Of a DNA stretch of 64,000 bases, positions 6,570 to 37,048 are shown in pieces; positions within the stretch are counted from its first letter, which is position 1, and each line of letters begins with the position of its first letter. Location of the stretch: the sequence record ON529855.1. One strand, written 5' to 3'. The notes beneath the pieces are model-generated. The model was given only the letters and a program-made list of their open reading frames with translations. It was not told where the DNA came from and made no database searches. A program made the translations under genes and the position numbers.

Positions 6570-6570
6570 A

Positions 6571-6755: not shown

Positions 6756-6786
6756 CGAAACTTGGGAGTTCTAAGTGGGTATCAGA

Positions 6787-6882: not shown

Positions 6883-6889
6883 GAGAAGA

Positions 6890-6918: not shown

Positions 6919-6920
6919 CA

Positions 6921-8748: not shown

Positions 8749-8776
8749 AGGTCTCTCGGGGGGGGTTGGTCGCCGG

Positions 8777-9455: not shown

Positions 9456-9457
9456 GC

Positions 9458-10345
9458 TTACAAAGTCACGATCAGGCGGGGATTGAAGTTCGGGTTCAGT
9501 TCATGCCCGACATAGCCGCGAGGATTGCAGATCACGCGGGTCTCGCCGATCTGGTAGTCGCTGCTGTCATGCATGTGACCATGGACCCACAAGGCGGGCT
9601 CCCACTCCAACATCAGCGGCTCCAGCCGCGACGCATAGGCGGGGTTCAGCGGCGATCCCCGATAACGAGGATGGCTCGACTGCTCCGACGGCGCATGGTG
9701 GGAGATCACCACGGTCGGGCCGTCATGAGGAACCCGCAGCGTTTCCGTCAGGAAGAAGCGGCTTTCCAGATGAAGGCGCCGCGTGTCGTCCGCCGTCAGG
9801 CGCTGCTGCTGCTTCAATTCGATCTGCCGATAGTCGTTCATGTCCGACTGGGCGTGCCGGATCGACAAGGGCCAGGTCCCATAGAGGTCGAAATCGGTCC
9901 ACAGGGTGGCGCCGAGGAAACGCACGTCGCCCACATGGACCTGCTCGTTATCCATGACGAAGACGCGGGCGGGCGCCAGTTCGTCAGCCTTGGCCTTCAT
10001 CTTCTCGATGTGGCGGTGGTAGCGCCGCTTGCCGTAGAACTCGTGATTGCCCGGAACATAGAGGCAGGGGACGTCAGGGAAATGCCGCGCCAGCCAGATC
10101 ACGCCGACGACGCCCGTCGCCAGGTCGCCGGCGGCGATGACCACGTCGATCTCGTCAGCCGTGGGCGCCGTCCAGGTGCGACGGTCCATTCCGCCGAACT
10201 CCAGATGGAGGTCCGACAGGATCAGGGCGCGCAACGGCCGTCGTCCAGGAGTCCGCCGCGCCAGGCCGGCTTCGATGTCAGCCTGCATGTCGGCCGCAGC
10301 CGCCACAGTGAACTCCATCTCAGCCTTGCTCCACTTGGTCTCCAT
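9458..10345 (-). CDS. Calcineurin-like metallophosphoesterase
   Basis: SDLH, AGDL, PGNHEFY, SHHAP and HGHMH motifs. Confidence 0.9.
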   Translation of the reverse strand: METKWSKAEMEFTVAAAADMQADIEAGLARRTPGRRPLRALILSDLHLEFGGMDRRTWTAPTADEIDVVIAAGDLATGVVGVIWLARHFPDVPCLYVPGNHEFYGKRRYHRHIEKMKAKADELAPARVFVMDNEQVHVGDVRFLGATLWTDFDLYGTWPLSIRHAQSDMNDYRQIELKQQQRLTADDTRRLHLESRFFLTETLRVPHDGPTVVISHHAPSEQSSHPRYRGSPLNPAYASRLEPLMLEWEPALWVHGHMHDSSDYQIGETRVICNPRGYVGHELNPNFNPRLIVTL

Positions 10346-10365
10346 CGTGGAGCATCCTTGAAATC

Positions 10366-10484
10366 TGGAGCGGGTGGACAGACTCGAACTGCCGCCTCCG
10401 GGTTAGCCACCCGGCGCTCCTGGGTCCACGCGAACCCCCGACGATGATTCGCGTGATCATCGTCGGCCCTAGAGCCTCACCCGC
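10366..10484 (-). ncRNA. 119 nt tRNA-like RNA with expanded D-loop domain
   Basis: GCGGGTG/CACCCGC-T-CCA, D stem GCTCT/GGAGC, 5 bp stem with loop TGGCTAA, canonical T arm; two hairpins inserted in the D loop. Confidence 0.65.
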
Positions 10485-10722
10485 ATAAGTTGGCAGGAGT
10501 TTTCAGATATGGCGAACCATACCCAGGGCGACCCTCCTGCCAGGAACCCCCGTCTCGGTTTCTTTCACTGGCCCCGACACGAGCACCTGTCAAAGCCTAT
10601 CTAGCCGCCAGGCTTGCGGAACGTCTCGGGCGATTAGGCGCCTCGGGATGAACAGCGTTGCGGACGGCGTAGCATCGGCTTGCCGTGATTACTGACAGAC
10701 GGCGCCGGTGGTGTCAACAATG

Positions 10723-10753
10723 AAAAACGCCCCGACCTTTCGATCGGGGCGTT
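10723..10753 (-). terminator. Intrinsic terminator ending the cluster 2 transcript
   Basis: AACGCCCCGATC-GAAA-GGTCGGGGCGTT + TTT. Confidence 0.75.
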
Positions 10754-10755
10754 CT

Positions 10756-11067
10756 TCAGAGGTTCGCCATCCACTGCTTACGGCAGCGGGTGTGATCCTT
10801 CCAGGACTTGCCGCCGGGGCGCGACGCCATGAGGTCGTCGTAGGACGAGGGAAGGACCATGCGTCGGCCACGGGCGCGGTAGAGGCGATCGTGGGCTTCG
10901 CCGATGTTGCGCCGCCGCTCCTGCATGGTGCGGGGGCAGCGGTGCATGTAGCGCCAGCGGTGGCGGAAGCGCCGGCAGCGGTAGGGCTCGCCGGGCTCCA
11001 GGTAGAGGACGCGCCAGCCCACGAAGTAGAAGCCGGAGTGGGTGACGCGCTCGAATTGGGGCTTCAT
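10756..11067 (-). CDS. Basic hypothetical protein
   Basis: 103 aa with GGAGG SD. Confidence 0.6.
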   Translation of the reverse strand: MKPQFERVTHSGFYFVGWRVLYLEPGEPYRCRRFRHRWRYMHRCPRTMQERRRNIGEAHDRLYRARGRRMVLPSSYDDLMASRPGGKSWKDHTRCRKQWMANL

Positions 11068-11167
11068 GTCAGCCTCCTGCTAGGTTGAGTACCTAGCGGG
11101 TGCTGTATTCCAGGTAGAACTTGATCATGGGATCATCCTAGCCCAAGCGGGGCTGTTCGTCTAGGAA

Positions 11168-11256
11168 TGGCGGATGGGGCAGGGATCGAACCCGCGTAAC
11201 CCTCTCGGGTGTCGACCGCTTAGCAAGCGGCTGCCTTACCTCTCGGCCACCCATCC
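11168..11256 (-). tRNA. tRNA-Ser(GCT)
   Basis: GCCGC-TTGCTAA-GCGGT, long variable arm, G73, CCA. Confidence 0.9.
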
Positions 11257-11263
11257 GGGGTGT

Positions 11264-11348
11264 TGGCGGTGCGCCAGGGAATCGAACCCTCAACCTTGCG
11301 GTCGGCGACGGTTTTCAAGACCGCTTGTCCCCATGGACGCTGCGCACC
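11264..11348 (-). tRNA. tRNA-Ser(TGA)
   Basis: GCGGT-CTTGAAA-ACCGT, G73, CCA. Confidence 0.85.
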
Positions 11349-11353
11349 GAAGG

Positions 11354-11444
11354 TGGCGGACGGCACGCGATTCGAACGCGTGGGACCCAGGGGGTCCGCC
11401 TGCCTTCCAAGCAGGTGCCTTAAGCCGGGCTCAGCCAGCCGTCC
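11354..11444 (-). tRNA. tRNA-Ser(GGA)
   Basis: CCTGC-TTGGAAG-GCAGG, G73, CCA. Confidence 0.85.
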
Positions 11445-11449
11445 GGTGT

Positions 11450-11667
11450 TGGTGGAGGCGAGGGGATTCGAACCCCCGTAGACGCCGAACCCTCGCATTA
11501 CCAAGGGCCGATCTCAGGTTTAGAACGCGTGTGCCGCCCTGACCATCTTCCGCAGGCCAGGGGGTCTATCGTAACGACCCCGTCGATCGGTTGCCTCTGC
11601 GTCCCGGATTTACCCGGACCGTTGCTCTGTTCCACGGTGCTCATGCCGAAACCCGAGCGACGCCCCC
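11450..11667 (-). ncRNA. 218 nt tmRNA-like / alanine-acceptor RNA
   Basis: GGGGGCG/CGCCTCC-A-CCA with G3:U70, canonical T arm, GGTTTCGGC near the 5' end, several internal hairpins. Confidence 0.6.
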
Positions 11668-11676
11668 GTGAAGAAA

Positions 11677-11764
11677 TGGAGGATGGTGTGGGATTCGAAC
11701 CCACGGAACCTTGCGGTCCACCGGTTTTCGAAACCGGCGCGATCGGCCTCTCCGCCAACCATCC
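11677..11764 (-). tRNA. tRNA-Ser(CGA)
   Basis: CCGGT-TTCGAAA-ACCGG, long variable arm. Confidence 0.88.
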
Positions 11765-11771
11765 AGAACAG

Positions 11772-11960
11772 TCAGGCCGAGGCCGGACTGTAGTTGTCGA
11801 TGTCGTCGACCCGGATCGCCGTGCCCGCCGCAATCTGGCGGTCGGCGCTCAACAGTTCGGCGACCAGGTCGTCGGCCGTGACGGCGGCGCCGGAGGTGGC
11901 GAACTTCACGTTCACCAGGCGGCCGTCAGCGAACATCTCGTCGATCGCGGCGCGATCCAT
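11772..11960 (-). CDS. Small hypothetical protein within tRNA cluster
   Basis: MDRAAIDEMFADG..., 62 aa, AAGG SD. Confidence 0.55.
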   Translation of the reverse strand: MDRAAIDEMFADGRLVNVKFATSGAAVTADDLVAELLSADRQIAAGTAIRVDDIDNYSPASA

Positions 11961-11993
11961 GATAGACCTTTCTGCCGGCCTCGCCGGCGGTGA

Positions 11994-12064
11994 TGGTGGA
12001 GACAGTGGGGCTCGAACCCACCAAGGCTTCCTTGCAAAGGATGCCTGCGCCCTGCGCTGTCCCC
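11994..12064 (-). tRNA. tRNA-Ala(TGC), short D arm
   Basis: Loop TTTGCAA; G3:U70, A73. Confidence 0.75.
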
Positions 12065-12101
12065 GTAGGGGTTGAGTGTCAGCCATGCCGACAATAAGTG
12101 T

Positions 12102-12177
12102 TGGTCCTGGCACTCAGATTCGAACTGAGCCATCGTGCTCCACAAACACGCGCCTCCACCGCAGAGGCTTTACCAGG
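12102..12177 (-). tRNA. tRNA-His(GTG)
   Basis: CGTGT-TTGTGGA-GCACG; no G-1 and A73, as in alphaproteobacterial tRNA-His. Confidence 0.8.
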
Positions 12178-12179
12178 GT

Positions 12180-12267
12180 TGGTCGCGACGACAGGGGTCG
12201 AACCTGCCCGGCCTTTCGGCCACTACCACCTCAAGGTAGCGCGTCTACCAGACTCCGCCACGTCGCG
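12180..12267 (-). tRNA. tRNA-Leu(GAG)
   Basis: CTACC-TTGAGGT-GGTAG. Confidence 0.9.
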
Positions 12268-12276
12268 ATCGAAAGT

Positions 12277-12362
12277 TGGTGCCCGTCCCCGGACTCGAAC
12301 CGGGACGCCACGAGGGCCACGCCTTTTGAGGGCGCTGCGTCTACCTTTCCGTCCAGACGGGC
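12277..12362 (-). tRNA. tRNA-Leu(CAA)
   Basis: GCGCC-CTCAAAA-GGCGT. Confidence 0.9.
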
Positions 12363-12372
12363 AGTTGAAAAA

Positions 12373-12459
12373 TGGTGCGGGCGAGAGGATTCGAACCTCC
12401 CCGGCACAAAGGCCACGAGTACCTGAGACTCGCGCGGCTACCAACTTCGCCACGCCCGC
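12373..12459 (-). tRNA. tRNA-Leu(CAG)
   Basis: CGAGT-CTCAGGT-ACTCG. Confidence 0.9.
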
Positions 12460-12464
12460 ATTTT

Positions 12465-12546
12465 TGGAGAACCCTGGTGGAGTCGAACCACTTGCGCCTG
12501 GATTAAAAGCCCAATCCCGGCCACCCGGATTTAACGCTCAAGGTCC
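12465..12546 (-). tRNA. tRNA-Lys(TTT), atypical D arm
   Basis: TTGGG-CTTTTAA-TCCAG; GGACCTT/AGGGTTC-T-CCA. Confidence 0.65.
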
Positions 12547-12559
12547 CCTAAAGTTATGT

Positions 12560-12650
12560 TGGTGAACGTGGTCGGACTCGCACCGACGATGAAGGTTGTA
12601 ACCTAACGGGATTAAGAGCCCCGGCCTCTCGCTACTGAGGTGACACGTCC
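12560..12650 (-). tRNA. tRNA-Lys(CTT), long variable arm
   Basis: CGGGG-CTCTTAA-TCCCG; variable hairpin AGGT-TACA-ACCT. Confidence 0.75.
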
Positions 12651-12685
12651 AAAACTGTTGTTCTTCTCTCCTGAAGACTTGAAAA

Positions 12686-12756
12686 TGGAGCCGGCGGACG
12701 GTGTCGAACCGTCCCATGTCCACTACGAAAGGTCAGCCCTGCCACCAGGCGCCGGC
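12686..12756 (-). tRNA. Degenerate tRNA, probably Thr(CGT)
   Basis: Good acceptor and T arms; GACCT-TTCGTAG-TGGAC with two mismatches; G1-C72/C2-G71. Confidence 0.45.
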
Positions 12757-12762
12757 GTTGTT

Positions 12763-12833
12763 TGGTGCCAAGGGAGGGAGTCAAACCCTCGCTGAACCCA
12801 TACCAAGGGCTCGACCGATCACCCGGCCTTGGC
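12763..12833 (-). tRNA. tRNA-Thr(GGT)
   Basis: AGCCC-TTGGTAT-GGGTT; GCCAAGG/CCTTGGC-A-CCA. Confidence 0.75.
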
Positions 12834-12841
12834 GTTGATGT

Positions 12842-12916
12842 TGGTCGGAACACCAGGATTCGAACCTGGGACCCCTAGCTTCCCGAGCCAGTGCGCTACC
12901 GCTGCGCTACATTCCG
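12842..12916 (-). tRNA. tRNA-Pro(GGG)
   Basis: CTGGC-TCGGGAA-GCTAG (C33); C1:G72, A73. Confidence 0.8.
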
Positions 12917-12925
12917 AGTTGATGA

Positions 12926-13002
12926 TGGTCGGCGAGGGAGGATTCGAACCTCCGATCCCTCCGACCCGAACGGAGTGACTTACCAGACTTGCCCACACGC
13001 CG
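12926..13002 (-). tRNA. tRNA-Pro(CGG)
   Basis: CTCCG-TTCGGGT-CGGAG. Confidence 0.88.
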
Positions 13003-13011
13003 ATGGAAACG

Positions 13012-13044
13012 AAAAAGGCCCCGGAGGCTTTGCGCCTGGGGCCT
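13012..13044 (-). terminator. Intrinsic terminator/attenuator upstream of tRNA cluster 2
   Basis: AGGCCCCAGGC-GCAAA-GCCTCCGGGGCCT + TTTTCGTTT. Confidence 0.75.
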
Positions 13045-13116
13045 GAAACATCTGCTGTTTTGGGGTTCAGCAGGTGATCGGCCCCTTAGGGCGCCTCACC
13101 TGCTTGGTGCCTGTTG

Positions 13117-13248
13117 TTACAGGAAACCTTCCAGGGAGACGCCACCGGTGGTGGGGGACTTCGTCGACAGTTTCGGCGCATGCGCGAGCGTCGACAGCGC
13201 CGTGGCGGCGGTCGAAAGCGGGCTCAGCTTGTGCGACAAGGTGGTCAC
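13117..13248 (-). CDS. Putative leader peptide MTTLSHKLSPLSTAATALSTLAHAPKLSTKSPTTGGVSLEGFL (43 aa)
   Basis: GTG start, weak GGA SD; 3' part of track ORF 13117..13398; residues 2-34 are only T, L, S, H, K, P and A. Confidence 0.62.
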   Translation of the reverse strand: MTTLSHKLSPLSTAATALSTLAHAPKLSTKSPTTGGVSLEGFL

Positions 13249-13300
13249 GATGAAGGTCCAGTCCGAAGAAGGAGCGCAAATGCGCTGTGATGAAGTCTGA

Positions 13301-13329
13301 TCTCTACAGGAAGCTTGAGCGTATGTCAA
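13301..13329 (-). promoter_or_regulatory. Sigma70-type promoter for leader 2/tRNA cluster 2
   Basis: TTGACA-N17-TAGAGA. Confidence 0.65.
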
Positions 13330-13512
13330 GAACTTCAGAAGAAAAAAGTTGAGGAGCGATGTGTGCGTCCCGCTCGAAACGTCTTGTGCCAGGATCAACG
13401 GCAGACGTCAACAGGAAAATGCACGCGCGCGGCCGAGGGGGAGCGGAAGACCGCGCGCGTGCCGGCAGACCGTCGGGGGACGGGGCCTGGGGTCGTCGGG
13501 GGACGGGGAGGG

Positions 13513-13749
13513 TCAGCCGGCGCGGCGCTTGAGCGTCTCGTGCAGCGGCGGATAGGGGACCGGGGCGTAGATCACCTCGACCAGGCGAGGGCGGCGGCCG
13601 GTGCGGATTTTGGCAGGCAGGGGCACGTTGCGGCGCCGCAGTTCGGCGGCGGCGGCGGCGCTCGCCAGGGAGCCCGACAGGTAGACGCCGATCAGTTCGG
13701 CGACCGTCAGGGTCATCATGCGCTGGGCGCGGGTGGTGTTGTGAGCCAC
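13513..13749 (-). CDS. Hypothetical protein
   Basis: 78 aa with GGAGAG SD. Confidence 0.55.
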   Translation of the reverse strand: MAHNTTRAQRMMTLTVAELIGVYLSGSLASAAAAAELRRRNVPLPAKIRTGRRPRLVEVIYAPVPYPPLHETLKRRAG

Positions 13750-13848
13750 GAGGGTCTCTCCATCTGGATGTGATCCAGGCGAGAGACACGGGCGCGCGCT
13801 AGGCGGCCGCGAAGGGTCTCCGTCCTGGAAGTTACCAGATGCGAGAGA

Positions 13849-14040
13849 TTAGTCGGAGGGCTTGGCCCCGAAGACCGAGGCGATCGCCGTCAAAGCCTTC
13901 TTGACCCGGTTGGGTCGTTGGGTCAGCGCCGAGGCGCAGACCTTCTTGATTTCGTCAAGGGTGAGCGAGGCCGGGTCACGCAGGCCGCGCGCGGCGATCG
14001 AGCCGACGCTGGCGGAGGTGACTTCGGTGGTGGTGCTCAT
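13849..14040 (-). CDS. Hypothetical protein
   Basis: 63 aa with GAGG SD, right after tRNA-Asp. Confidence 0.55.
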   Translation of the reverse strand: MSTTTEVTSASVGSIAARGLRDPASLTLDEIKKVCASALTQRPNRVKKALTAIASVFGAKPSD

Positions 14041-14050
14041 GGGAAACCTC

Positions 14051-14125
14051 TGGCGAGTCCAAGGGGAGTTGAACCCCTCTCTCCACCGTGACAGGGTGGT
14101 GTCCTAACCGATAGACGATGGACCC
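14051..14125 (-). tRNA. tRNA-Asp(GTC)
   Basis: CCACC-CTGTCAC-GGTGG, G73. Confidence 0.9.
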
Positions 14126-14156
14126 GTATCAGAGGGTCGATCCGCAGGAAGATGCT

Positions 14157-14234
14157 TGGAAGGGCGCCGGAGACTCGAACTCCGCTCACTTGGTTGAAAG
14201 CCAAGTATCCTGCAAACCGCTAGACGAGCGCCCC
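14157..14234 (-). tRNA. tRNA-Glu(TTC)
   Basis: CTTGG-CTTTCAA-CCAAG. Confidence 0.88.
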
Positions 14235-14365
14235 ATAAAGCACAGGGCGTCGAACACGAGAGCCGCGATTAGGCGGCGGTCGTATCTCGGCCCTGGAAGG
14301 CCTCTCGTTCGTAGCTGGTCAGACGGTAGGTCATTTGTCGCTTGTATCAGAACTGTCGGTGGGTG

Positions 14366-14545
14366 TCAAGAAGGACGGCGAATCTTTTTGGACCTTGCAT
14401 GGGGTCGGTCTTCCTCGGCCTCAGGCTCGGCCGCGTCCCAGGCCATCCACAGGGCCGCGAGAAAAGCAGGCGGACCCATCAAGTCTTCCAACCGCTTCAA
14501 GGCCCGGTCGTTGGCCGCCAGGAAGGCGTCGCCGTATTCAAGCAT
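14366..14545 (-). CDS. Small hypothetical protein (MLEYGDAFLAAND..., 59 aa)
   Basis: GAGG SD, GC3-rich codons; below track cutoff. Confidence 0.55.
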   Translation of the reverse strand: MLEYGDAFLAANDRALKRLEDLMGPPAFLAALWMAWDAAEPEAEEDRPHARSKKIRRPS

Positions 14546-14995
14546 CGTGACCTCGGGAGATTTCAGGGGGCCGGCTTTGGCGCGCGGCGTTTAACCGCCG
14601 GCGCCTAGACGGAGGCAGCGTGCCAGCCCTGCTCGACTGGCCCAGCCCCCTCAAGGCGATGAGTGCCAGGAAAGGCGGCAATGGTCAAGGGGAAATGCGG
14701 TGGGTACAGCTTCAACCGGCCTTGCGGCCTGCGGGTCTTTCGGGCGTCCTGCCCACCGCGCCTACTACGACGCCTTTTTCGGCCCCGGCGCGCCGGAGAG
14801 AAAAAATCGACGGGTGACCGCTACCGGCCTCGCCTGCTGGCCCGTCCCAGCGCCTGACCTTCTCTTCGCGACGCCCTTGTGGGCGTTATGGCCTTCCCGT
14901 CCGAAGACAGACGCCGTGAAGGGTCAGCGGGACCGCATGATCGTCAGCCGCACGGCCAGCGCGGCGAGCGGATCAGAGGCCTGTCCCGGAAAGAA

Positions 14996-15069
14996 TGGAG
15001 CGACTGGTCGGAATCGAACCGACGTCCCCAGGGTGGAAACCTAGTGCTAAGCCTCTCAGCTACAGCCGC
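14996..15069 (-). tRNA. tRNA-Gly(TCC)
   Basis: CTAGG-TTTCCAC-CCTGG, U73. Confidence 0.9.
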
Positions 15070-15083
15070 AGTATAAAAGAGGG

Positions 15084-15159
15084 TGGAGCGACTCTCGGGA
15101 CTCGAACCCGACCCTGCGCGTTGGCAACGCGTTGTACCCACCCATAATACGTGAGTCGC
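15084..15159 (-). tRNA. tRNA-Gly(GCC)
   Basis: CGCG-TTGCCAA-CGCG, U73. Confidence 0.85.
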
Positions 15160-15172
15160 AGTGGTTAATAAA

Positions 15173-15254
15173 TGGCACGGGTGGAGGGATTCGAACCCCC
15201 GACGTATGCTGGTTTTGGAGACCAGTGCCTTGAGCCAGACTTGGCGACACCCGT
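15173..15254 (-). tRNA. tRNA-Trp(CCA)
   Basis: CTGGT-CTCCAAA-ACCAG. Confidence 0.88.
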
Positions 15255-17621: not shown

Positions 17622-20600
17622 ACATAGGCCAGAGCCGACGCCTCGCGGGAGGTCGGCGTCGGCGCGTCCAACAAGGAGCCCGTATCGGGCGCGGCGGGAT
17701 CACCCACCATCGTCATATCAGCGGCGAAGGCCGTCGGGCCGCGTCGGGCCGACAGCGTGGGAGCGGCGCCGGTGACGGCGATCATGGCGGCGTGCCACCC
17801 TGCTTCCAGCACCACGTCCTGGTCCACGGACTTCGGTCCGGTAGGTCCGGAGGCCGACACCTGCACGCTCACGGCGACATCGCCGGGCATTTGAAGCGCC
17901 TGGTCCCAACGACAGACGCCGAACCGGATCGTGCCGGCCGACGCCGCAGTGATCGTGACGCCGAAACGGGTGAACCGGGTCGTGCGCGGCAGGAAGAACG
18001 GACGATAGACCACCTTGCCGACGGGCGGCTGGTTGGCCGAAGCGTCCATGCCGAAGTCGGTCAGATAGCGATCGCCCGCGCGCGCTGGCAACAGCACCGG
18101 CGCATCGTAGACGGGGTCCGGCGCGCGCCAGGTTCCGTCCGCATAGAGGATGTCCCCAGGCTCGCCGCCCTCGGGAGCCACGCCGCCCAACGCGATACGG
18201 CCCAGGGGCCGCGCCTGCATGACGCCGTAACCGTCGGTCGCGAAGAGGAGACCATCCGTCTCGTTCAGCGCAATTTCCAGCGGCTCAAGCGCGATGGGGA
18301 CATTGCCGCGCACCAGGGTGCGTTTGTAGCGGATGACCACGCCGCCCGACCCCGAGACGTGCACCCCGTCGCCATCTTCGACATAGCCTTCGACCGGTTG
18401 GAGATAGACCGTCGGCAAGGGCGCCGACGCCGAGGTTCCGCCCGCGCCTTCCGATTCCGGCGGAGAGACGAGGATGACGGAATCACTCAGGTCGCCGTCG
18501 ACGACCGCCGCCGTCAGTTCGGCGGCGAAACCGCGCGGCGGCGTCACGTAGATGCGGTCGAAGTAGTTGATGCGGACGGTGGCGCTGCGGCTGAACGAGG
18601 CCAGCGGCGTGCCGACCAGGATCAGGCCGAGGTCGCGAGACACGCTCGCGGTCACTTCGACCAGGGGGTCTCCGTTCATGCCGACCGCGATCGTGACGAG
18701 AGGACCGCCCTGAGGCCCCGCACTGACGATGGCGTTGGCCGCGCCCGTCGCTCCGCCCGTGGCGAAGGCGATCGTGATGTCGTTCTCGAACGGCTCGGTG
18801 GTGTAAGGAATGGGCAGTTCGCCCAACCCTGCCAGCGGCACGATCTGAACCGGCGCGCCGAAATCGCCGTCGGCCGTTTCATCGGGACCGCTCAGGTCGC
18901 CCTGGGGCGCCTGGAGCGTGACCACGCCCAGGAACTGACCCGGCTGCGGAGCCCAACCGGCATTGCCCTCGGCGGAGCCTTCAGGCGCCGTCAGCGGGAT
19001 GACGCTGTCGATCTCACCGATCCACATGTCGGCGACGCCCATCTCGCCCTCGATCTCGGAGAGAGCGATCACCAGAGGGTCGAACATCTCGAAGCCGTTG
19101 CCGAGAATGTAGTTCATCGGCTGGAGCGTGACCGTCAGGGTCTGGTCCAGTTTGAGATCGACGCCGGCCTCCAGGCCCACGGACGGCGGGAAGGGATAGG
19201 CGAGGTCCTCGCCGATCCCCGTCACCACCAGGGCGTCGTTCTGAGGCTGACCGCCCAGATCACCCGAGACGTAGATGGTCGGCAAATAGGCGCCGATGCC
19301 GCCTGCGGCCTTGGCCTGCGGGTCCATCATCAGGATGGATTCGCCCAGGTCACCCGAACCTTGAGCGCCCATGGCGATGGCGCCGACCGGCGGAACGACG
19401 GTGACAACCGGCAAGGAACCGACCGCGTCTCCGGCTTTCGATCCCTCGCCCGATCCCGACGCCGAGGTCACCAGAACCGTGCCGATCTGCGTGACGTTGA
19501 ACGTCACCGGGATGGACAGTTCACCCTCGAACACCGACAGAGCGGCCAGGCCAGGCCCGCCCGCCATGCCGGGCACGATGGCGAAGTTGGGCACCCCGCC
19601 CAGGCCGACGCCGGACTGATACACCGGATTGGTGGTCCCAGCAGGCGTGCCCGTCGCGGACGTCTCCGTGACCCCCTCCAGGAGGAGGTCGCCCAGGAAG
19701 CCGGAGCCGCCGCCGGCTGATCCCGACGTCGATCCGCTGTTGAGCGCGCCGCCGCCGCCGCCGTAGTAGCCGCCGCCGCCGCCTGCGCCGGTCGCACCCA
19801 CGCCGCTCGCGCCCACGACGCTTTCGCTGCCGTCGATCTGGAACCCGTCGCCGCCGCGAAGATAGGCTCCGTTGCCGTTGCCGCTGGTGTTCGACGCGCC
19901 TACGCCGCCCGCTGACTGCGTGCCGCCCGTGCCCATGCCTTGCGCCGTTCCGACGCCGTTGCCGCCGGACAGACCGCCACCGAACCCGCCGCGACGGGCC
20001 GCCGTCGCCGCCCCCGCGCCGCCTCCGCCGACGACCGCCACCAAGACGCCATTACGCCAGACGCGGGTCGAGCCGCCGCCCGCACCGCCGCCGTAGGTTC
20101 CCGGTCCGCCGCCGCCGCCGTCGGGCCAACCGCCCATGCTGCCCGTGAAGTTGCCCGGCGAAGAGCCGCCTTGGCCCACTTCAATGCGAATGAGGTCGCC
20201 CGGCTGGAACATGACGACGCCGGTCAAGTGACCGCCCGCGCCGCCGATCGAGTCCTGGGCGATCGTGTTGGTGTAAAGCTGCGAGCCTGCGCCGCCGCCG
20301 CCCCACAGGTTCAGATTGACGCCGCCGCTGAAGGTGGTGATGAAATCTCGGGGACCATAAACGTCGCCCAGCAGCGAGAGCGCGCCTTCCGGCAACGGCG
20401 CGATCGACGCGCCGGGCGTAAAGTCGAGAACCGCCCGGCCGTCGCCGCCGGGAAGGATCGCCGCCTTCGTCGCCTGGACGCCGCCCACGCCCACGCCCGC
20501 CGCATAATCCGCGTCGCCCGTCGCCGGGGGATTGGCCCCGACACCGCCCGCGAGGCGGTAGTTGAGCGCCAAGGGGCCGCCGTAGCTGGAACCGCCGCCG

Positions 20601-30180: not shown

Positions 30181-32223
30181 TTAGTTCGTGAAGGAGAGCG
30201 CGGAGATCGCCTGGCCCTGGACCAGCTTGAACCGCACGAGGATGAGGTTGTCGGTCGCGTTCGTTGACGACTGCGTGCCGAAGGTGATGGTGAAGGCGCC
30301 GGTCGAGCCCGACATGACCGTGCCGGAGGCGCAGCCCGCCAGCGGGTCGCCGGCTTCGCCGGGCACGCCCGCGCCGTCGTAAGGCTTGAAGCCGTCCCAC
30401 CAGCCGCCAGGGGCGTTCGGCTGCTGATCGGACACGCCCGGCAGCTTGACCCAGCAACCGGCGTAGGCGCCGGTGACGTTGATCTTGAAGGCCGAGCGCG
30501 CGGCGCGACGGAAGGCGAAGGTGACGTACTGGGCGCCGTCTCGGCCGACCGACAGGTCCGGACCCGCCGGCAGGTGCCCCTGGGCGTAGTTGGTGCGGTT
30601 GTGTGCCAGGACGCCGGCGACGACCGCTGCTTCGTGGGCCGGCAGGGCCGCCGTGGCGTCCCAGACCCCATGCGCCGCAGCCGGCGTGTCGCCAGCGGCC
30701 GTCGATACCCGCACGGCGTTGAGCGTGTTGGGCAGGGCGCCGAGGCCGGTGACCGACACGCTCATTTCGTCCAGGCGCGCGCCAGCCGCGCCGCGCTTGA
30801 TCAGAATGGTCGGGCCGCCGAGATCAGTGGTGACGGAGCCGTTGACGTTGCGGGCGACGCCGGAGACCTTGCCAGACACATGGCCCGAGCCGTCGACGGC
30901 GATCGTCTGCGGCGTCACGGCCTGCGCCGTCAAGGTGTTGCGCGCCAGCGGCGCGTCGATGCCGGTCGACGGCACATAGCCGAAGGTCTTGGTCGCGATG
31001 ACGGGTCCCGAGAACTGAACGGGATCGCCGCCGCCGTAGTAGGTTTCGCCCGCCAGATTGGCGATCGACATGGCGACCGTCAGGGTCGCGCCATCGCCAT
31101 AATGAGGAACCCCCGAAGAATAGGCCAGCGTCCCCGCCGAGGCCTGGGCCACCGATCCGGCCGAGATGACGGGCGAAGCCGTCATGTCGTCGCGCATGAA
31201 AACGACGGGATTCGTGACTCCGGCCTGACTATGCGCCATCTGGACCGAGTTCAGTCCGAAGGGCGCCGGCAGGAGGTTCAGGCTGACGTCGATCGACTTC
31301 CAGAAGCCCGGCGTCTCGACTGGGAAGTCCTTCTGGTCCGCAATCACGAGCCCGGCGTAGGACCCGTTGTCGCCCTCACCCGTCAGGGTGCGGCTGGTGA
31401 CCACGGCGCCGTTCAGGCTGACGGCGATCAGGCCCGCGTCGCCAGGGCCGACGTCACCGAACACAAACGACGAGAAACCGGCGGCCGTGATGCGGCTGAC
31501 GGCGGTGCCCGGCGTGAGGGATGCGCTGAAGTTATTGGTGTAGCCCTGGGTCAGGCGCGGCGATGCGCCGGCGCCGTTGGCGATCGCCAGGGTCCCGTTC
31601 GGGAACATCGGCGGCTGCGAAGGGATCAGCTTGCCCAGCACTTCATTGAGGCGGTCCACCGCTTCGGACACCGGCGTGGCGTTCTCCAGCGGCACAGCGC
31701 CCGGCGTCCAGGACCCGTCGCCGTGCTCGACGATGTCGCCCAGAATGACGTGGAAGCCGTCCAGGTTGTCGATCTTGTCGGCCGCGTCCTGGAGGCGGAC
31801 GTTGACCTTCGAGATCGCCGTGGCGACGTCGGTGGTCTCGTCCAATGCGACCGCGCCAGTCTCCCACAGGCCTTCGCCCGAGATCGGATCGATGCGGTCG
31901 CCCAAGGGGATGTTGATCCCGATGGGGGAGAAGTTCGCGAGGGCCAGGTTCAGGCGCTGAAGCGCCTCGGCCATGTTGTCGGTGGGCTCCAGCACCACCA
32001 GGCCGCCGGTCCAGTCGGTGTTGTCGCCCAGCAGGATTTCGTCGGCGTCGCGCGCCTCGGCGACGACGACGCTGACCGAACCGTCAGCCCCGTATTCGCC
32101 CGCGAACAACAGCCCGCAGGTGTACCCCTCGTCTTCCGGCGGGGTCTTGGCGAAAAGGGGGAACGCCCGGTGGGTTTCGACGTCGACTGCGACATCGCCC
32201 GTGACGTCGACGAGCAGAGCCAT
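30181..32223 (-). CDS. Putative virion fibre/structural protein (680 aa)
   Basis: GDGSWTPGAVPL...VSEAVDRLNEVLGKL.PSQPPMFPNGTL through FGTQSSTNAT.N.ILVRF shared with the previous gene. Confidence 0.6.
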   Translation of the reverse strand: MALLVDVTGDVAVDVETHRAFPLFAKTPPEDEGYTCGLLFAGEYGADGSVSVVVAEARDADEILLGDNTDWTGGLVVLEPTDNMAEALQRLNLALANFSPIGINIPLGDRIDPISGEGLWETGAVALDETTDVATAISKVNVRLQDAADKIDNLDGFHVILGDIVEHGDGSWTPGAVPLENATPVSEAVDRLNEVLGKLIPSQPPMFPNGTLAIANGAGASPRLTQGYTNNFSASLTPGTAVSRITAAGFSSFVFGDVGPGDAGLIAVSLNGAVVTSRTLTGEGDNGSYAGLVIADQKDFPVETPGFWKSIDVSLNLLPAPFGLNSVQMAHSQAGVTNPVVFMRDDMTASPVISAGSVAQASAGTLAYSSGVPHYGDGATLTVAMSIANLAGETYYGGGDPVQFSGPVIATKTFGYVPSTGIDAPLARNTLTAQAVTPQTIAVDGSGHVSGKVSGVARNVNGSVTTDLGGPTILIKRGAAGARLDEMSVSVTGLGALPNTLNAVRVSTAAGDTPAAAHGVWDATAALPAHEAAVVAGVLAHNRTNYAQGHLPAGPDLSVGRDGAQYVTFAFRRAARSAFKINVTGAYAGCWVKLPGVSDQQPNAPGGWWDGFKPYDGAGVPGEAGDPLAGCASGTVMSGSTGAFTITFGTQSSTNATDNLILVRFKLVQGQAISALSFTN

Positions 32224-32224: not shown

Positions 32225-32596
32225 CTAGCGGAGACGGATTTGGATGTGGTCCTGCGGGATGATGATCCCCTGACCGGCTTCGGTGGCGCGCGACGTGCGC
32301 AGACGGCCGTAGAGAACCATGTCCCCAGCGGCGTCGAAGATCGCGAAGTAGTTGACCTGGACCCAGTCGTTGAGCGCGGGGCCGAAGGCCAGCGGGCCGA
32401 CCGAGGTCAGGTTGGTGATGCCGGCGGCGACGGTCTTGGCGAGCGTGATCGGACGGCGCTCGTAACCGAGGTCGGCCGCCGGCTCGACGATCAGCGTGCC
32501 GTCAGGCTCGGGTGCGGACGCGAGCAGGCCCAGGGTGAGATCATCACCCCAGGCCGCGAGGATCGCGTCGTGAGTCTTGTACGACAGGTTGGGCAC
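32225..32596 (-). CDS. Fibre anchor-like small protein
   Basis: GYERRPITL...F.PA..DW..V.YFAIFDAAG.M..YG.L pattern. Confidence 0.55.
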   Translation of the reverse strand: MPNLSYKTHDAILAAWGDDLTLGLLASAPEPDGTLIVEPAADLGYERRPITLAKTVAAGITNLTSVGPLAFGPALNDWVQVNYFAIFDAAGDMVLYGRLRTSRATEAGQGIIIPQDHIQIRLR

Positions 32597-32607: not shown

Positions 32608-33156
32608 TTACTTGGCCTTGCGACCGCGACGGGGAGTCTTGGAGACGGTGGTCGTGTCGGCGGCTTCGGCGACAGCCGAAACGTCGATGGCGTCTTCGTT
32701 GTCCAGGTCCGACGAGTCGTCGGCCGGGGCGGCGGAGAAGTCCTTCACCTCGGGCTCCGGCAGGTGGGCGGCGGCGGCCGCAGCAGCGGCGGCCTTGGCC
32801 TGCACTTCAGCCTGGGCAGCCGCAGCAGCTTGTGCGGCGGCGGCTTCCAGAGCCTGCTGCTGAGCGATCGCGGCGGCCATGGCGGCTTGCTGCTGTTGCA
32901 GGGCCTGGGCGGCCTGCGACGCGGCCGGGGACTGCCCGTTCTCGTCCTTGCCGGTGGCGCGGTCGAGCACGCGCTGCGACGGCGCGGGGCCTTCCGGCGG
33001 GGTCACAGTGGCGAAGGGCGCGTAGGCGGCCGGGTTCGCCGGAACGAAGCGAGTCCACGAATAGCCGGCGCCGACGACGAGGTCACGCGCGTTGGGGCGG
33101 GTGTGACGTTCGGGGTTGCCGTTGGAGTCGTAGATGATGACGGTGTTGTCGGCCAT
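32608..33156 (-). CDS. Ala/Gln-rich hypothetical protein, first gene of the fibre operon
   Basis: ATG at 33156 (MADNTV), downstream of the conserved promoter at 33249-33264. Confidence 0.6.
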   Translation of the reverse strand: MADNTVIIYDSNGNPERHTRPNARDLVVGAGYSWTRFVPANPAAYAPFATVTPPEGPAPSQRVLDRATGKDENGQSPAASQAAQALQQQQAAMAAAIAQQQALEAAAAQAAAAAQAEVQAKAAAAAAAAAHLPEPEVKDFSAAPADDSSDLDNEDAIDVSAVAEAADTTTVSKTPRRGRKAK

Positions 33157-33356
33157 GTGCGGCGTAAATCCTGCGTATCGGGTAGATGCGAAAAAGGGCG
33201 CAGTCGAGCCGCGCGAGACTAGGCTTTCTGGCATGAATCCTGCTCAAAGTCAAGATTTCCAGCACTGAGCGCCAGGAATCGCGGCAATCAGAGTCCCCTT
33301 GACGAGCGATCTAATCTCGATCTAAATCCGATCGTCTTTAGATCGAGAGGAAACCC

Positions 33357-33527
33357 ATGGACAAACTGTATAGCTGGTCGAGCAAGCGCGCCGGCGGCCG
33401 CATCACCATCAAACATGCAACCGGAAAGATCGTGAACGTGGACGTGATCGAACCCATCAACGGCAAGGTCGTCGCGATCGACAAGGACGGCCGCTCCTAT
33501 GAACTGGTCGTCGCGCCGCCCGTTTAA
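33357..33527 (+). CDS. Small hypothetical protein MDKLYSWSSKRAGGRITIKH... (56 aa)
   Basis: GAGAGG SD, promoter TTGACG-N17-CTAAAT at about 33299-33327; below track cutoff. Confidence 0.65.
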   Translation: MDKLYSWSSKRAGGRITIKHATGKIVNVDVIEPINGKVVAIDKDGRSYELVVAPPV

Positions 33528-33606
33528 TCCACATATCCACAACAGCCGCGCTTCTGTGGATAAGTCAGGATTCCTGATTGACGGTCCAGGGCAGCCCGGC
33601 TACATC
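33525..33606 (+). promoter_or_regulatory. Caulobacter-consensus promoter with upstream DnaA-like boxes and a GANTC site
   Basis: TTGACG (33578) ... GCTACATC (33599-33606); TGTGGATAA 33555-33563; TAATCCACA and ATATCCACA at 33525-33541; GATTC 33569. Confidence 0.65.
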
Positions 33607-33611
33607 CCTAA

Positions 33612-34129
33612 TCGTCGCTTCGGAAACGGAGCGGCCGGCAACCGGGCCTCGGCCCTACTAGCCGGGCTTCCAAGGGTATGCGGCCTCCGGGCTGATCCCA
33701 CGGGAGTTGAGACCGGACGCCGGGGTGACCCGGCCCATCCGCCGAGACATGGTATCTCAAGGCTGCCGCAGCCCAAGAGACCACCCCTCGGACCGCCCGA
33801 GGCCGTAAGGCTGGAGGTCAGGAGTCTCAGGAGATCGGTCAGCAATGATCCGGTCGACCCTAAGGCGTCGCGGACTTCGCACCCTCGGGTGCGGGAGCCA
33901 AGATGTAGAGATGCGGGTCTAGGCGTCACAGCTTCGACCTTCAGGTATGAGCCCCTCCACGGCGACGTGAAGGAAGCGTCAGCCTCACCTTCTTCGGGGA
34001 AACCTGATGCCCTGGTGAACTCTCTTGCCCAGACTGTAACGGTCGAAAGCAGGCGCGAAGTCGGACCAGAACCAGATTGTCGGGAAGGCCCGCCTCGTAT
34101 CTTCGGATGCAGGCGGGCCTTTTGCGTTT
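33612..34129 (+). ncRNA. ~500 nt structured non-coding RNA
   Basis: Promoter-to-terminator unit with no plus-strand ORF in the track; GNRA/UUCG-capped hairpins and nested long-range helices. Confidence 0.7.
34085..34129 (+). terminator. Intrinsic terminator
   Basis: AAGGCCCGCCT...ATC-TTCG-GAT...AGGCGGGCCTT + TTGCGTTT. Confidence 0.8.
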
Positions 34130-34148
34130 CAGGGCAGACATGAATAAA

Positions 34149-34465
34149 GCCGCCCCTTTCGAGGCGGCCTGGTGATCGGCCGATACCCGATCCGACGTCG
34201 TTCGACCTTATGACCTGGCCGACGTCCGCGCTGCGCGGTCCCACAGACCTCGCGATCTGCTCCATATTTACCCAGCGCGGGGCGTAAACGCGCTGCTGAA
34301 CTAAGCCATCCGCTTCATGACGTCCCGATACTCCCCCATTACGGGCGCGGCCTCGGTAAACGGCGCTCTCGCGGACCCACAAGGATTACGGCCCCTGCCT
34401 CATATTTACCCAGCGCGGGGCGTAAACGCGCTGCATGAAAAAGGCCGCCCCTTTCGAGGCGGCCT
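34149..34465. repeat. Nested direct repeats: 22 bp hairpin x2 flanking 34 bp unit x2
   Basis: GCCGCCCCTTTCGAGGCGGCCT at 34149 and 34444; CATATTTACCCAGCGCGGGGCGTAAACGCGCTGC at 34263 and 34401. Confidence 0.85.
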
Positions 34466-34494: not shown

Positions 34495-34923
34495 TTAGGC
34501 CTTCGAGTTCGGGGCGGCGAACGCGTAGTACGACACCGTGCCCGTGGTCGGCTCGACGTCGGCGAAGACGCGGATGCCGGCGGCGTCGGCGTCAGCCGCA
34601 GCCAGGGTGGCGGGATCGAACTTCAGCACGAAGGTCTTGCCGGCGACGGCAGTGACCGAACCACCGGGGGCGTCGACCGGGTTGGCGCCAGCGGCGTCAA
34701 CGGTCTGGACCTTGAGGGTGGCGTCCGTGGCGGCGTCGACGACGATGACGACGTCGAACGGCGTTTGGCCGTACAGGTTCTTCAGGTCGCCGCGACCAGC
34801 GGTCAGGCGGTGAAGGTCGACGACCAGGCCGCCGGGGCCATCAGCCGTGACGGCGGTGGCGCGATCATCGATCGAACGGAGCGCCAGAAGGGCGTCATAA
34901 CCGTGCTTGATCTTGGAGTTCAT
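34495..34923 (-). CDS. Minor capsid/decoration protein
   Basis: Directly after MCP as in phiCbK-like phages; ATG at 34923 (MNSKIKHGYDALL). Confidence 0.65.
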   Translation of the reverse strand: MNSKIKHGYDALLALRSIDDRATAVTADGPGGLVVDLHRLTAGRGDLKNLYGQTPFDVVIVVDAATDATLKVQTVDAAGANPVDAPGGSVTAVAGKTFVLKFDPATLAAADADAAGIRVFADVEPTTGTVSYYAFAAPNSKA

Positions 34924-34999: not shown

Positions 35000-35935
35000 T
35001 TAGGCGACGACGGCAGCCTTCTTGATGCCCCAGACGCGAGCGGCGGCGCGGCCCGACAGCACCGCGAGGCTGATCAGCCACTCGATGCGGGTACGGTAGA
35101 CCGGCTTGTCGTTGACTTGGCCGAGGTCGTCGACTTCCATCACGCCGTTTTGCAGGCCCATGACGCCCGAGTCGCCGATGTTCACGACGTAGATCGAGGT
35201 GCCGACAGCGGCGCCGCCACCGGGGTTCGCTTCGTTGAAGTCGATGACCTGGGTGTTGGTGTCGTCGTAGTCGGTGGTCAGGATGGGCAGGTCGTTGTAG
35301 AACGCGATGCGCTCACCGAACTCGTTCTTGTCCCAGGTGATGAAGCCGGCAACCGACGTCTGGCGCGAAGCGGCCGACAGCAGGTTACGCATGCGCTTCG
35401 ACATGATCAGGTGCGTGGCACCGTCAACGGCGTCGATGGCTTCGTCCAGGACTTGCAGCGACAGAGCGTCGCCGCCGGCCGAGGCGCCAGCCGGGATCAG
35501 TTGGTCGCCGACGATGCGCTTGCGCAGGCCGTCGAATTCACGCGGATCAGCTTCCGAGTCGCCGGTGATGATCTTGCCAGCCAGGAACAGCGAGAGGGCC
35601 TTGACCTTCATCTTTTCCTGCATGGTGCGGATGTTCGCGCCATGGGTCTTGATCAGCGCCTTGTCGACGTCCAGGTCGCCGCCGACGATCTTCAGAACTT
35701 CGACCTGCGAGTTGATGACGCCGACGCCGTTGCCGTAAGCTTCGTTGAAGCCACGGAACGCAACGCCCGGCAGTTGGCCTTCCTGGGTGTAGGTGTACGA
35801 GCCACCCGGAACATCCATGAACGGCAGGACCTTCAGGAGGTCCGGATAGGCGAAGAGTTCGATGATCGCCGAACGCTTGACCTCGTCGTTGCCCATCGCC
35901 AGATCGGCGGCTTCGAGCAGAGTGAGAGCAGCCAT
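35000..35935 (-). CDS. Major capsid protein (HK97 fold)
   Basis: 311 aa; LPGVAFRGFNEAY, GGDLDVD, EFDGLRKR, YRTRIEW; position after scaffold. Confidence 0.88.
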   Translation of the reverse strand: MAALTLLEAADLAMGNDEVKRSAIIELFAYPDLLKVLPFMDVPGGSYTYTQEGQLPGVAFRGFNEAYGNGVGVINSQVEVLKIVGGDLDVDKALIKTHGANIRTMQEKMKVKALSLFLAGKIITGDSEADPREFDGLRKRIVGDQLIPAGASAGGDALSLQVLDEAIDAVDGATHLIMSKRMRNLLSAASRQTSVAGFITWDKNEFGERIAFYNDLPILTTDYDDTNTQVIDFNEANPGGGAAVGTSIYVVNIGDSGVMGLQNGVMEVDDLGQVNDKPVYRTRIEWLISLAVLSGRAAARVWGIKKAAVVA

Positions 35936-36253: not shown

Positions 36254-37048
36254 TTAGTTCAGGCGCGCACCCTTGTCGCCGTTCGCCAGGGCCAGCTTGT
36301 CGTTGGCCGACATGCCGCGCATCTCGGCGGTCGTCTTGCCGAGCGGGCCGCGCTGGTCGCTACCGCCACCACCGCCGGCGCCGCCGCCGTGCGTGCCCTT
36401 GAACATGTGCGGGGCTTCGTCCTTCAGCTTCATGATCCACTCCTTGGGCGTCAGCGGCGAGCCGCCGTCAGCACCGTACAGTTGCAGATCGCCTTGGAAC
36501 GCCAGCACACGGCCGTCGTCTTGGGCGCGCCACACATCGGCTGCGCGGGACAGGATGTCGCGAACCGCCGAGGGCTGGACACCGAGTTCCGGGTCGATGA
36601 TGGCGTCCTTGATCGCGGTCGACACCAGCGTGCGCTTGTGAACACCTTCGATCTCGCCGGCCTTGGTCTTCCAGAGCGCGCCTTCCTTCTGGGCGGCGCG
36701 AATCTGGTCCTCCAGGACCTTCTTCATGTCTTCAGTACGACGGATGACTTCTTCTTCGATCCGGCGGCTGTCGGTCAGTTGACCGTCTTTGACGCGCTGC
36801 GAGGTAGCCCGCAGTTCAGTCAATTCGTTGGTGAAAGCGGTGGGGTCGTCGCCGACGATCGGCGCCAGGACCTCAACGGCCTTCTTGAGTTCGTCGCGCT
36901 CTTTGACGAGCCCGATGTTGGTTTCGCGGAACTCGTCCATCTTGTCCTGGGGGACCAGATTGATTTGGACCTTATCGCCGTCGGCCTTGGCGTAGCTGCG
37001 CAGGGCGTCCGGGATAGCGTCGAGCGAGTCGAACGTGAAAATCGGCAT
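36254..37048 (-). CDS. Putative capsid scaffolding protein
   Basis: Coiled-coil body, Gly-rich C-terminal tail, upstream of MCP. Confidence 0.6.
   Translation of the reverse strand: MPIFTFDSLDAIPDALRSYAKADGDKVQINLVPQDKMDEFRETNIGLVKERDELKKAVEVLAPIVGDDPTAFTNELTELRATSQRVKDGQLTDSRRIEEEVIRRTEDMKKVLEDQIRAAQKEGALWKTKAGEIEGVHKRTLVSTAIKDAIIDPELGVQPSAVRDILSRAADVWRAQDDGRVLAFQGDLQLYGADGGSPLTPKEWIMKLKDEAPHMFKGTHGGGAGGGGGSDQRGPLGKTTAEMRGMSANDKLALANGDKGARLN

Follow-up and report, generated by a model that had tools for sequence, protein, structure and literature searches.

To our knowledge, bacterial and phage RNAs longer than about 400 nucleotides (nt) with an elaborate conserved structure are rare, and nearly every such RNA that has been studied is a ribozyme, the core of a ribonucleoprotein or, recently, a self-assembling cage. 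Among phage-borne examples, ROOL and GOLLD have no known function and form 8-mer and 14-mer cages in cryo-electron microscopy (10.1101/2024.12.08.627333). The DNA analyzed here, a window of 64 kb, is identical to part of the genome of Brevundimonas phage vB_BpoS-Domovoi (ON529855.1, 352,705 bp, Dolichocephalovirinae; window position 33500 is record position 322205), and within its block of head genes it carries a putative RNA gene of about 518 nt (33612-34129, plus strand; 5' end placed from the -10 element and 3' end from the U-tract of the terminator). The paper describing this phage and its relatives makes no mention of a non-coding RNA (PMC10070969). We consider it very probable that the locus is a genuine gene for a structured RNA of a new family, whose nearest counterparts in kind are ROOL and GOLLD, though it belongs to neither. 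Our fuller reading, to which we give a probability of roughly 0.8, is that of a stand-alone gene for a compactly folded non-coding RNA, an accessory 'RNA moron' in the head-gene block with a putative mechanism. A first-pass annotation of this DNA had proposed a large structured non-coding RNA opposite the head genes, and the comparison of 16 homologues bears this out, with a dedicated promoter and terminator, no conserved reading frame and strong covariation.

Homologues of the RNA were found in six other jumbo phages of Brevundimonas pondensis, giving, with Domovoi, seven phages in three clades. Relatives of the 208-amino-acid (aa) protein encoded beside the RNA, taken from a large protein collection, led to Logan, ENA and JGI contigs with further copies. 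The full-length RNA is present on 12 metagenome contigs, nine of which were aligned (L229, L230, L232, L233, L236, L237, L239, L241 and L242); the others were not (L231, which matches L229, and L234 and L235, which match L233), and a 5' fragment of the RNA lies at the end of contig L240. The metagenome copies always stand just upstream of the gene for the 208-aa protein, on the opposite strand, and the position of the RNA between the minor capsid side and the head-protein genes is fixed in every carrier. The main alignment (A10) therefore holds 16 sequences, from the seven phages and the nine contigs, that represent about 10 lineages of one phage group.

The first-pass annotation had expected the RNA in phiCbK-like phages, an expectation that fails for the Caulobacter phages of this type that were examined: the RNA is absent at the syntenic site of CcrColossus, CcrPW, CcrBL9 and phiCbK, as it is from that of contig L243, where a 330-aa opposite-strand open reading frame (ORF) occupies the place. 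CcrColossus gp083, which has the same place and opposite orientation, was considered as a counterpart of the RNA and rejected, as it is apparently a genuine protein gene. Scans of IMG/VR, JGI metagenomes and GTDB genomes for exact motifs (CCAGAACCAGAT(N)GTCGGG, CGCTTCGGNAACGGAGCGG, GGGCCTCGGCCC...CTAGCCGGG and GGGGTGACCC...CTNCCGCAG) returned no homologue, all of the matches being chance occurrences in coding DNA according to nhmmer, and none of the IMG/VR loci reached through the 208-aa protein or the major capsid protein carries the RNA. As far as these searches reach, the family is so far confined to a group of jumbo phiCbK-like phages, comprising the seven B. pondensis isolates and uncultivated relatives.

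Folding statistics and sequence comparison both indicate a conserved structure. The minimum free energy of the Domovoi RNA is well below that of shuffled sequences on the plus strand (z = -3.17) and close to it on the minus strand (z = -0.69), and the Marchewka and Kikimora copies give z scores of -3.60 and -4.52. When the three phage clades were folded separately, the same series of hairpins emerged from very different sequences; the structure predicted from one clade gave 115 standard pairs of 174 in Kikimora, where slid controls gave 61-74, and the double changes numbered 28 (9-18 in the controls). Sequences of clades A and B only served to build a covariance model of the central domain (33707-33857, helix P9 included). 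Clade C was recovered by this model at the homologous position (35.7 and 29.7 bits), the metagenome copies scored 113-126 bits, and no match arose in the Caulobacter phage loci. The model also produced a weak full-length match elsewhere in the window (19260-19386, minus strand; 17.9 bits, E about 0.06), which is probably due to chance. Across the 12 distinct sequences of this domain, standard pairs fill 92.9% of the cells (30-45% in slid controls) and 26 of the 51 pairs are changed on both sides (3-8 in slid controls), values that were reached in none of 500 shuffles. The 3' domain is 97.3% paired, with double changes in 6 of 26 pairs and 0-1 in the controls. RNAalifold, run on a MAFFT alignment of all 16 sequences, proposed 108 pairs with compensatory changes in 43. 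Together, these comparisons show about 20 predicted helices maintained through compensatory mutation, and the G-U pairs within conserved helices identify the plus strand as the RNA strand. GNRA loops are kept in seven hairpins while their variable positions change (GAAA/GUAA; GUGA/GCGA; GUAA/GUGA/GCGA; GCAA/GCGA/GUGA/GUAA; GCGA/GUGA; GAAA; GUAA/GCGA), and loops that vary but remain GNRA are typical of RNAs with tertiary contacts.

The predicted fold opens with P2, a 5'-terminal hairpin (33614-33635) whose loop is GNRA in 16/16 sequences (GAAA or GUAA) and whose closing pair switches between G-C and A-U in 5/16 (columns 13/34). Between P2 and the terminator hairpin, the body of the RNA would be closed by the candidate helix P1', in which CGGCAA (33636-33641) pairs with UUGUCG (34077-34082); all 96 cells are standard, A-U is replaced by G-C in four sequences and G-U by G-C in one. 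An earlier candidate for this role, UAAUC/GAUUG, was abandoned in favor of P1', since it is present in clades A and B only and broken in L233, L236, L229 and L237. P1' and P3 are mutually exclusive pairings, P3 being a local helix of four pairs (CGGC 33636-33639 with GCCG 33661-33664) that never covaries and has a C.A mismatch in two sequences; the two may form in turn. The hairpin P3a (GGGC-CUCG-GCCC, 33644-33655) is nearly invariant, and covariation is silent on it for want of variation. P4 is a long three-part hairpin (33666-33707) that takes the same shape from unlike sequences in the three clades, with double changes at columns 66, 69, 70, 75, 86 and 88. The central four-way domain (33708-33829), to which the covariance model and the slid and shuffle controls apply, consists of P5 (33708-33713 with 33824-33829) enclosing the GUGA hairpin P6 (33714-33741), P7 with its conserved CUGCCGCAG tip (33742-33791) and P8 with a GUAA loop (33792-33823). 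It is followed by P9 (33830-33858), a hairpin that shares in the covariation of this domain and has a GCAA, GCGA, GUGA or GUAA loop.

In the 3' half, the long hairpin P10 (33866-33905), which includes CGCACC-CUCG-GGUGCG, has double changes in six pairs and the same shape in Kikimora, and its detail in distant lineages is uncertain. The long-range helix P11 (AGAG 33906-33909 with CUCU 34020-34023) is standard in 64 of 64 cells, and all four of its pairs have undergone compensatory change over three lineages (ACAG/CUGU in L237, AGAC/GUCU in L239, UCGG/CCGA in L241 and L242). Within it lie P12 (AGGC-GUCACA-GCUU, 33920-33933; three of four pairs double-changed, columns 335-338 with 345-348), P13 (33945-33952 with 33978-33984), capped by CACG-GCGA-CGUG (33958-33969), and P14 (UCGGG-GAAA-CCUGA, 33993-34006). 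P13 and its cap have double changes in five and three pairs, respectively, and a GCGA or GUGA loop in 16/16 sequences; the P14 loop is GAAA in 15/16 and its stem covaries. P15 (34024-34053) joins CUUG with CAGG below an apical GACUG-UAA-CGGUC whose tip reads GUAA or GCGA. A nearly invariant single-stranded junction, ACCAGAACCAGA (34065-34076), precedes the 3' strand of P1', and no pairing partner was found for it. A pairing of 33908-33914 with the terminator tail, proposed by RNAalifold with ribosum scoring, shows no covariation and was judged spurious.

The hairpins that the first-pass annotation had read from the Domovoi sequence are all present, namely CGCTTCG-GAAA-CGGAGCG (33616-33633), CCGGG-GTGA-CCCGG (33720-33733), GCC-GTAA-GGC (33802-33811), GGTCA-GCAA-TGATC (33837-33850) and CGCACC-CTCG-GGTGCG (33878-33893). 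Its long-range proposals fared differently: the nested helices GACTTCGC/GCGAAGTC, GCTTCGACC/GGTCGAAAGC and TCAGG/CCTGA, as well as a possible TGGAGG/CCTCCA pseudoknot, are complementary in Domovoi and are not kept outside the Domovoi clade. In the other clades these pairings are broken or uncompensated (0-7 of 8, 0-5 of 9 and 1-4 of 6 pairs kept), and they compete with local helices that covary. As a whole, that description stands for the hairpins, promoter and terminator, and falls for the long-range helices, the pseudoknot and the claim, taken up below, that the locus has no plus-strand ORF.

Several points weigh against the reading of the locus as a defined, compactly folded RNA. Alignments based on a model lean towards the structure of that model, which makes the figures for the central domain generous, and with about 10 lineages from a single phage group, many of the compensatory changes are shared by descent, such that the shuffle statistics overstate their independence. 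The most distant clade, C, was not recovered by a model of 33856-34011 built on clades A and B. The RNAalifold structure of that stretch contains doubtful helices, and the pairings given for region 33910-33990 and the choice of P1' over P3 are tentative. Furthermore, the start and the 3' end of the RNA are predicted from sequence, and our analysis found no partner protein, target or catalytic signature.

The RNA is preceded by a predicted promoter of the host RpoD (sigma-73) type (33578-33606, plus strand), with a -35 element TTGACGG (33578-33584), a 14-nt spacer and a -10 element GCTACATC (33599-33606). This is an exact fit to the Caulobacter RpoD consensus, TTGaCgS/GCtANAWC (PMC8144410), and the only match to TTGAC-N15-17-GCTANA within the 64 kb, where 0.08 would be expected. 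A generic scanner of the E. coli type flagged neither this promoter nor the terminator of the RNA, and it missed the promoter because the latter follows the Caulobacter pattern. Across 11 lineages, the -35 and -10 elements are conserved and stay the same distance apart, with the spacer sequence free to vary. At the other end, the intrinsic terminator (34084-34129, plus strand) comprises a two-part GC-rich hairpin with a UUCG tip (34084-34122) followed by UUUUGCGUUU, and is conserved in 16/16 sequences with double changes at columns 533/549 and 537/546. The first-pass claim that a promoter and a terminator bracket some 500 nt was therefore well founded, the distance being about 518 nt. A separate terminator hairpin for the minus strand (34139-34170) stands back-to-back with that of the RNA, which implies that the late operon does not read through the RNA locus. 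Comparison of these elements thus shows what appears to be an autonomous promoter-RNA-terminator unit on the strand opposite to the head genes, insulated by back-to-back terminators.

Three DnaA-box-like 9-mers, TAATCCACA, ATATCCACA and TGTGGATAA, were detected by a box-consensus scan within 39 bp upstream of the promoter in Domovoi (33525-33563). On the other strand, TGTGGATAA is a perfect DnaA-box consensus, TTATCCACA, and the sole perfect 9-mer match in the 64 kb. The outer pair of boxes forms an inverted repeat, CCACA...TGTGG, that ends 14 bp upstream of the -35 element. The TGTGGATAA box, as TGTGGA(T/A)AA, is the most conserved upstream element, being present in 11/11 aligned lineages with one base different in one of them, and the second box-like site that faces it in an inverted repeat varies by lineage (ATATCCACA, TTATCCACA or GTCCCCA). 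The left arm GTCCCCA of some lineages resembles the weak Caulobacter W-box. A box matching TTATCCACA thus lies beside the core promoter and is conserved in relatives, as in DnaA-regulated promoters. Caulobacter DnaA is a transcription factor besides being the initiator (PMC6393856). The boxes may be bound by DnaA or by another dimeric regulator.

The locus has the attributes of a stand-alone structured non-coding RNA, with a conserved promoter and terminator, no conserved frame and compensatory substitutions beyond those of controls, and also those of a phage moron, being an autonomous promoter-gene-terminator unit between structural genes with a patchy distribution among relatives. One close relative bears the scar of a deletion. 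At L228:1588-1836 (minus strand) the upstream spacer runs straight into the final ~30 nt of the RNA (CAGAACCAGATTGACGGGAAAGCCC), with loss of the boxes, the promoter and ~455 nt of the RNA; the neighbouring genes are intact and the neighbour protein is 79% identical. This scar implies that the RNA is dispensable in at least one lineage.

Two GenBank records place a protein gene over the RNA: DOMOVOI_05190 (33499-34143, plus strand; 214 aa, ATG start) and KABACHOK_04620 (Kabachok, L005:1500-2138). The region could accordingly be the mRNA of this 214-aa protein, whose ATG frame is uninterrupted in the Domovoi clade and contradicts the first-pass statement that no plus-strand ORF is present, but the frame is open in that clade only and we find this explanation scarcely credible. 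Among the 13 homologues outside the clade, 12 have at least one stop in all six frames (L237 has one open minus-strand frame), and Marchewka/Bambus and Kikimora/Gurke have at least two in all six; every frame is closed in at least one lineage. Relative to Domovoi, the annotated frame has taken up substitutions in equal measure at its three codon positions (e.g., 37/28/31 and 75/81/78), and the indels are mostly of 1-2 nt and shift the frame. The translation has no PHROG family, and its sole relative among 5.8 billion proteins is the near-identical Kabachok copy. The frame on the opposite strand is equally open, and at 65% GC of the local sequence the open 214-aa frame can be regarded as an accident. 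DOMOVOI_05190 and KABACHOK_04620 are almost certainly not protein genes, a correction to two database annotations. It is also improbable that the RNA belongs, in divergent form, to a known class (ROOL, GOLLD, RNase P RNA, a group I or II intron, transfer-messenger RNA (tmRNA), 6S or omega/HEARO RNA). The 3' motif CAGAACCAGAUUGUCGG would favor such membership through its loose likeness to the 3' strand of RNase P P4. The size, GNRA richness and phage origin of the RNA likewise resemble those of ROOL and GOLLD (10.1101/2024.12.08.627333). Against this, Rfam 15 (4227 models) gave no match at the gathering threshold, and no family match either at E up to 10 over the Domovoi locus or at E up to 1 for four divergent homologues, the relaxed searches returning only terminator-like matches; the first-pass view that the RNA could be assigned to no family is thus upheld. 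Neither the ROOL model (RF03087, with its conserved P1-P19 core) nor the GOLLD model (RF01998, with its conserved 3' half) matched, and whereas ROOL and GOLLD lie beside tRNA islands, this RNA lies among head genes, ~18 kb from the tRNA island located by ARAGORN. The same program found no tRNA or tmRNA at the RNA locus, and no flanking exons, IscB or TnpB gene or reverse transcriptase gene occur nearby. As far as covariance models can see, the lack of an Rfam match excludes ROOL, GOLLD, RNase P, introns, 6S and omega RNAs.

The three DnaA-box-like sites immediately 5' of a strong host promoter, one of them invariant in 11 lineages, together with a dip in GC to 0.56 at 33200-33600, might instead mark a replication origin or a DnaA-controlled primer unit, the transcript acting in cis as an R-loop or primer like ColE1 RNA II, of which the length of ~520 nt and the heavy folding are reminiscent. 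However, the strong intrinsic terminator, kept through covariation, would release a discrete RNA, selection acts on helices and GNRA loops along the whole RNA and not at one end, and the L228 relative in the metagenome assembly has lost the boxes, the promoter and most of the RNA from between intact neighbours. There is also no skew inversion beyond the effect of the change in coding strand. The conserved terminator, the whole-length selection and the viable deletion make an origin or primer role unlikely, and we regard it as quite improbable. The same terminator, such as many leaders end in, and the convergence with the capsid-side genes could suggest a riboswitch or attenuator, or antisense control of the converging head genes. 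This is very improbable: in all lineages the terminator is followed by the 3' end of a converging, lineage-specific gene and never by a plus-strand gene, the strand opposite the RNA carries no annotated or called gene in any of them, and the minus-strand operon terminates before the RNA. A role in virion assembly or packaging, as a phi29 pRNA-like RNA or as a scaffold or ruler of the head, would be consistent with the fixed syntenic position in the head block of every carrier and with a compact RNA of many helices, as well as with the very long prolate heads of the carrier phages (267-381 nm; PMC10070969). We nevertheless hold it to be unlikely, given the host-type promoter on the opposite strand outside the late operon, the absence of the RNA from the phiCbK and Colossus relatives with the same head architecture, its deletion in L228 and the lack of Rfam similarity to pRNA.

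For the preferred reading, an accessory gene for a compact non-coding RNA, a mechanism can be proposed. Host RNA polymerase would transcribe the RNA, probably early and without phage factors, and the pair of DnaA boxes would tie its output to host DnaA or another dimeric regulator. Packing through the GNRA loops and invariant junctions would yield a globular particle, closed by P1' and capped at its ends by P2 and the terminator hairpin; these caps should protect it from exonucleases. This particle may serve as a trans-acting scaffold or decoy, either by itself or together with proteins and possibly as a multimer like those of ROOL and GOLLD; it would not act as a base-pairing regulator, leader or primer. 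We offer the scaffold or decoy mechanism as tentative. More doubtful still is a bolder version, in which a new class of ornate phage RNA builds a defined three-dimensional particle (a multimer, a ribozyme or a ribonucleoprotein core), wired to DnaA and serving head assembly, packaging or host takeover. If true, this would be the first such RNA in phages of Alphaproteobacteria and, among large phage RNAs, the first whose regulatory input can be read. The carriers, Domovoi and six relatives, are cultivable phages on the tractable and non-pathogenic host Brevundimonas pondensis; natural carriers, non-carriers and a natural deletion are at hand for comparison; the promoter is a simple host promoter with a candidate regulator site; and the 16-sequence alignment already defines most helices. 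These circumstances open the function of the RNA to direct tests, and it is at this point that work on ROOL and GOLLD has faltered.

The head-gene block around the RNA is transcribed entirely from the minus strand and includes the genes for the scaffolding protein (36254-37048), the major capsid protein (35000-35935), a 142-aa protein (34495-34923), the 208-aa protein (32608-33234), a 123-aa head protein (32225-32596) and a 680-aa protein (30181-32223). The neighbours of the RNA are thus head proteins and small proteins without assigned function, and the only plus-strand features in this stretch are the DOMOVOI_05190 region (33499-34143) and a 56-aa ORF (33357-33527) that has a good Shine-Dalgarno sequence and lies immediately 5' of the RNA. 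In four carrier lineages (L229, L236, L237 and the Domovoi clade) the 56-aa ORF is present at 64-79% identity; it is absent from the other carriers, and phage Bajun has a homologue of it alone among small early genes with no RNA beside it; it was therefore rejected as a partner protein of the RNA. An AlphaFold model of its product is all-beta and of low confidence (pLDDT 64). Directly 5' of the ribosome-binding site of this ORF lies a GATC-rich palindrome of 17+17 nt, TCTCGATCTAAATCCGA / TCGTCTTTAGATCGAGA (33315-33348).

Almost every lineage has a different gene converging on the RNA terminator (101-372 aa; seen in Kabachok, Papperlapapp, Kikimora, L229, L232, L237 and L241), and a Pfam scan of the variable genes flanking the RNA gave zero matches. 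The slot, at L005:2174-3109 in Kabachok, L004:2175-3110 in Papperlapapp and L003:2099-3034 in Kikimora, looks like a cargo hotspot. In both Kabachok and Papperlapapp it is filled by a 311-aa gene. The capsid search gave a second match somewhere in each of these two records.

Two families of repeats occupy the 365-nt gap downstream of the RNA, namely a terminator-like hairpin, GCCGCCCCTTTCGAGGCGGC, at 34139-34170 and 34434-34465, and a 59-nt unit of CATATTTACCC plus a hairpin at 34257-34315 and 34395-34453. A similar unit of CATATTTAAC plus a hairpin stands ahead of the head genes in CcrColossus (L011, about 6700-6740), and this CATATTTACCC/CATATTTAAC-plus-hairpin unit may be a late regulatory element of these phages. 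Another motif, GTCAAGATT(T/C)C(C/T), is found repeatedly ahead of opposite-strand units within the head block of several relatives, CcrColossus among them (L002:1450-1475; L003:1445-1470; L228:1735-1760, minus strand; L011:6075-6100 and 7150-7175, minus strand) and may be a phage-specific promoter or operator. Elsewhere in the window, 21 tRNA genes in four clusters were observed at 6010-15254 (minus strand), 15 of which reach the Rfam threshold.

Among the described systems, ROOL and GOLLD share the most with this RNA: like them it is phage-encoded, non-coding and dispensable, with many covarying helices and long-range contacts, and its length is near the 500-800 nt of that class. Unlike them, it has no Rfam match, lies in a head-gene block of phages with alphaproteobacterial (Caulobacterales) hosts and follows a host promoter flanked by DnaA boxes. 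ROOL and GOLLD are regarded as acting as RNA-only particles, and the present RNA may form a comparable particle. With the pRNA of phi29 it has in common a phage-encoded structured RNA and a host-type promoter, the role of pRNA being structural rather than regulatory. In contrast, pRNA is about 170 nt long and essential, and the RNA described here shows no match to it in sequence or structure and is dispensable in at least one lineage. ColE1 RNA II is similar in its length (about 550 nt), heavy folding and constitutive sigma-70-type promoter, but it acts in cis at an origin and its functional 3' end carries no intrinsic terminator, whereas the phage RNA is predicted to be terminated and released, and can be lost. 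Morons are defined in temperate phages, and the carriers here are plaque-assay isolates. Like a moron, the RNA gene forms an autonomous unit between conserved head genes, is present, absent or deleted among relatives and sits beside a variable cargo slot; unlike known morons, its cargo is not a protein but a large structured RNA.

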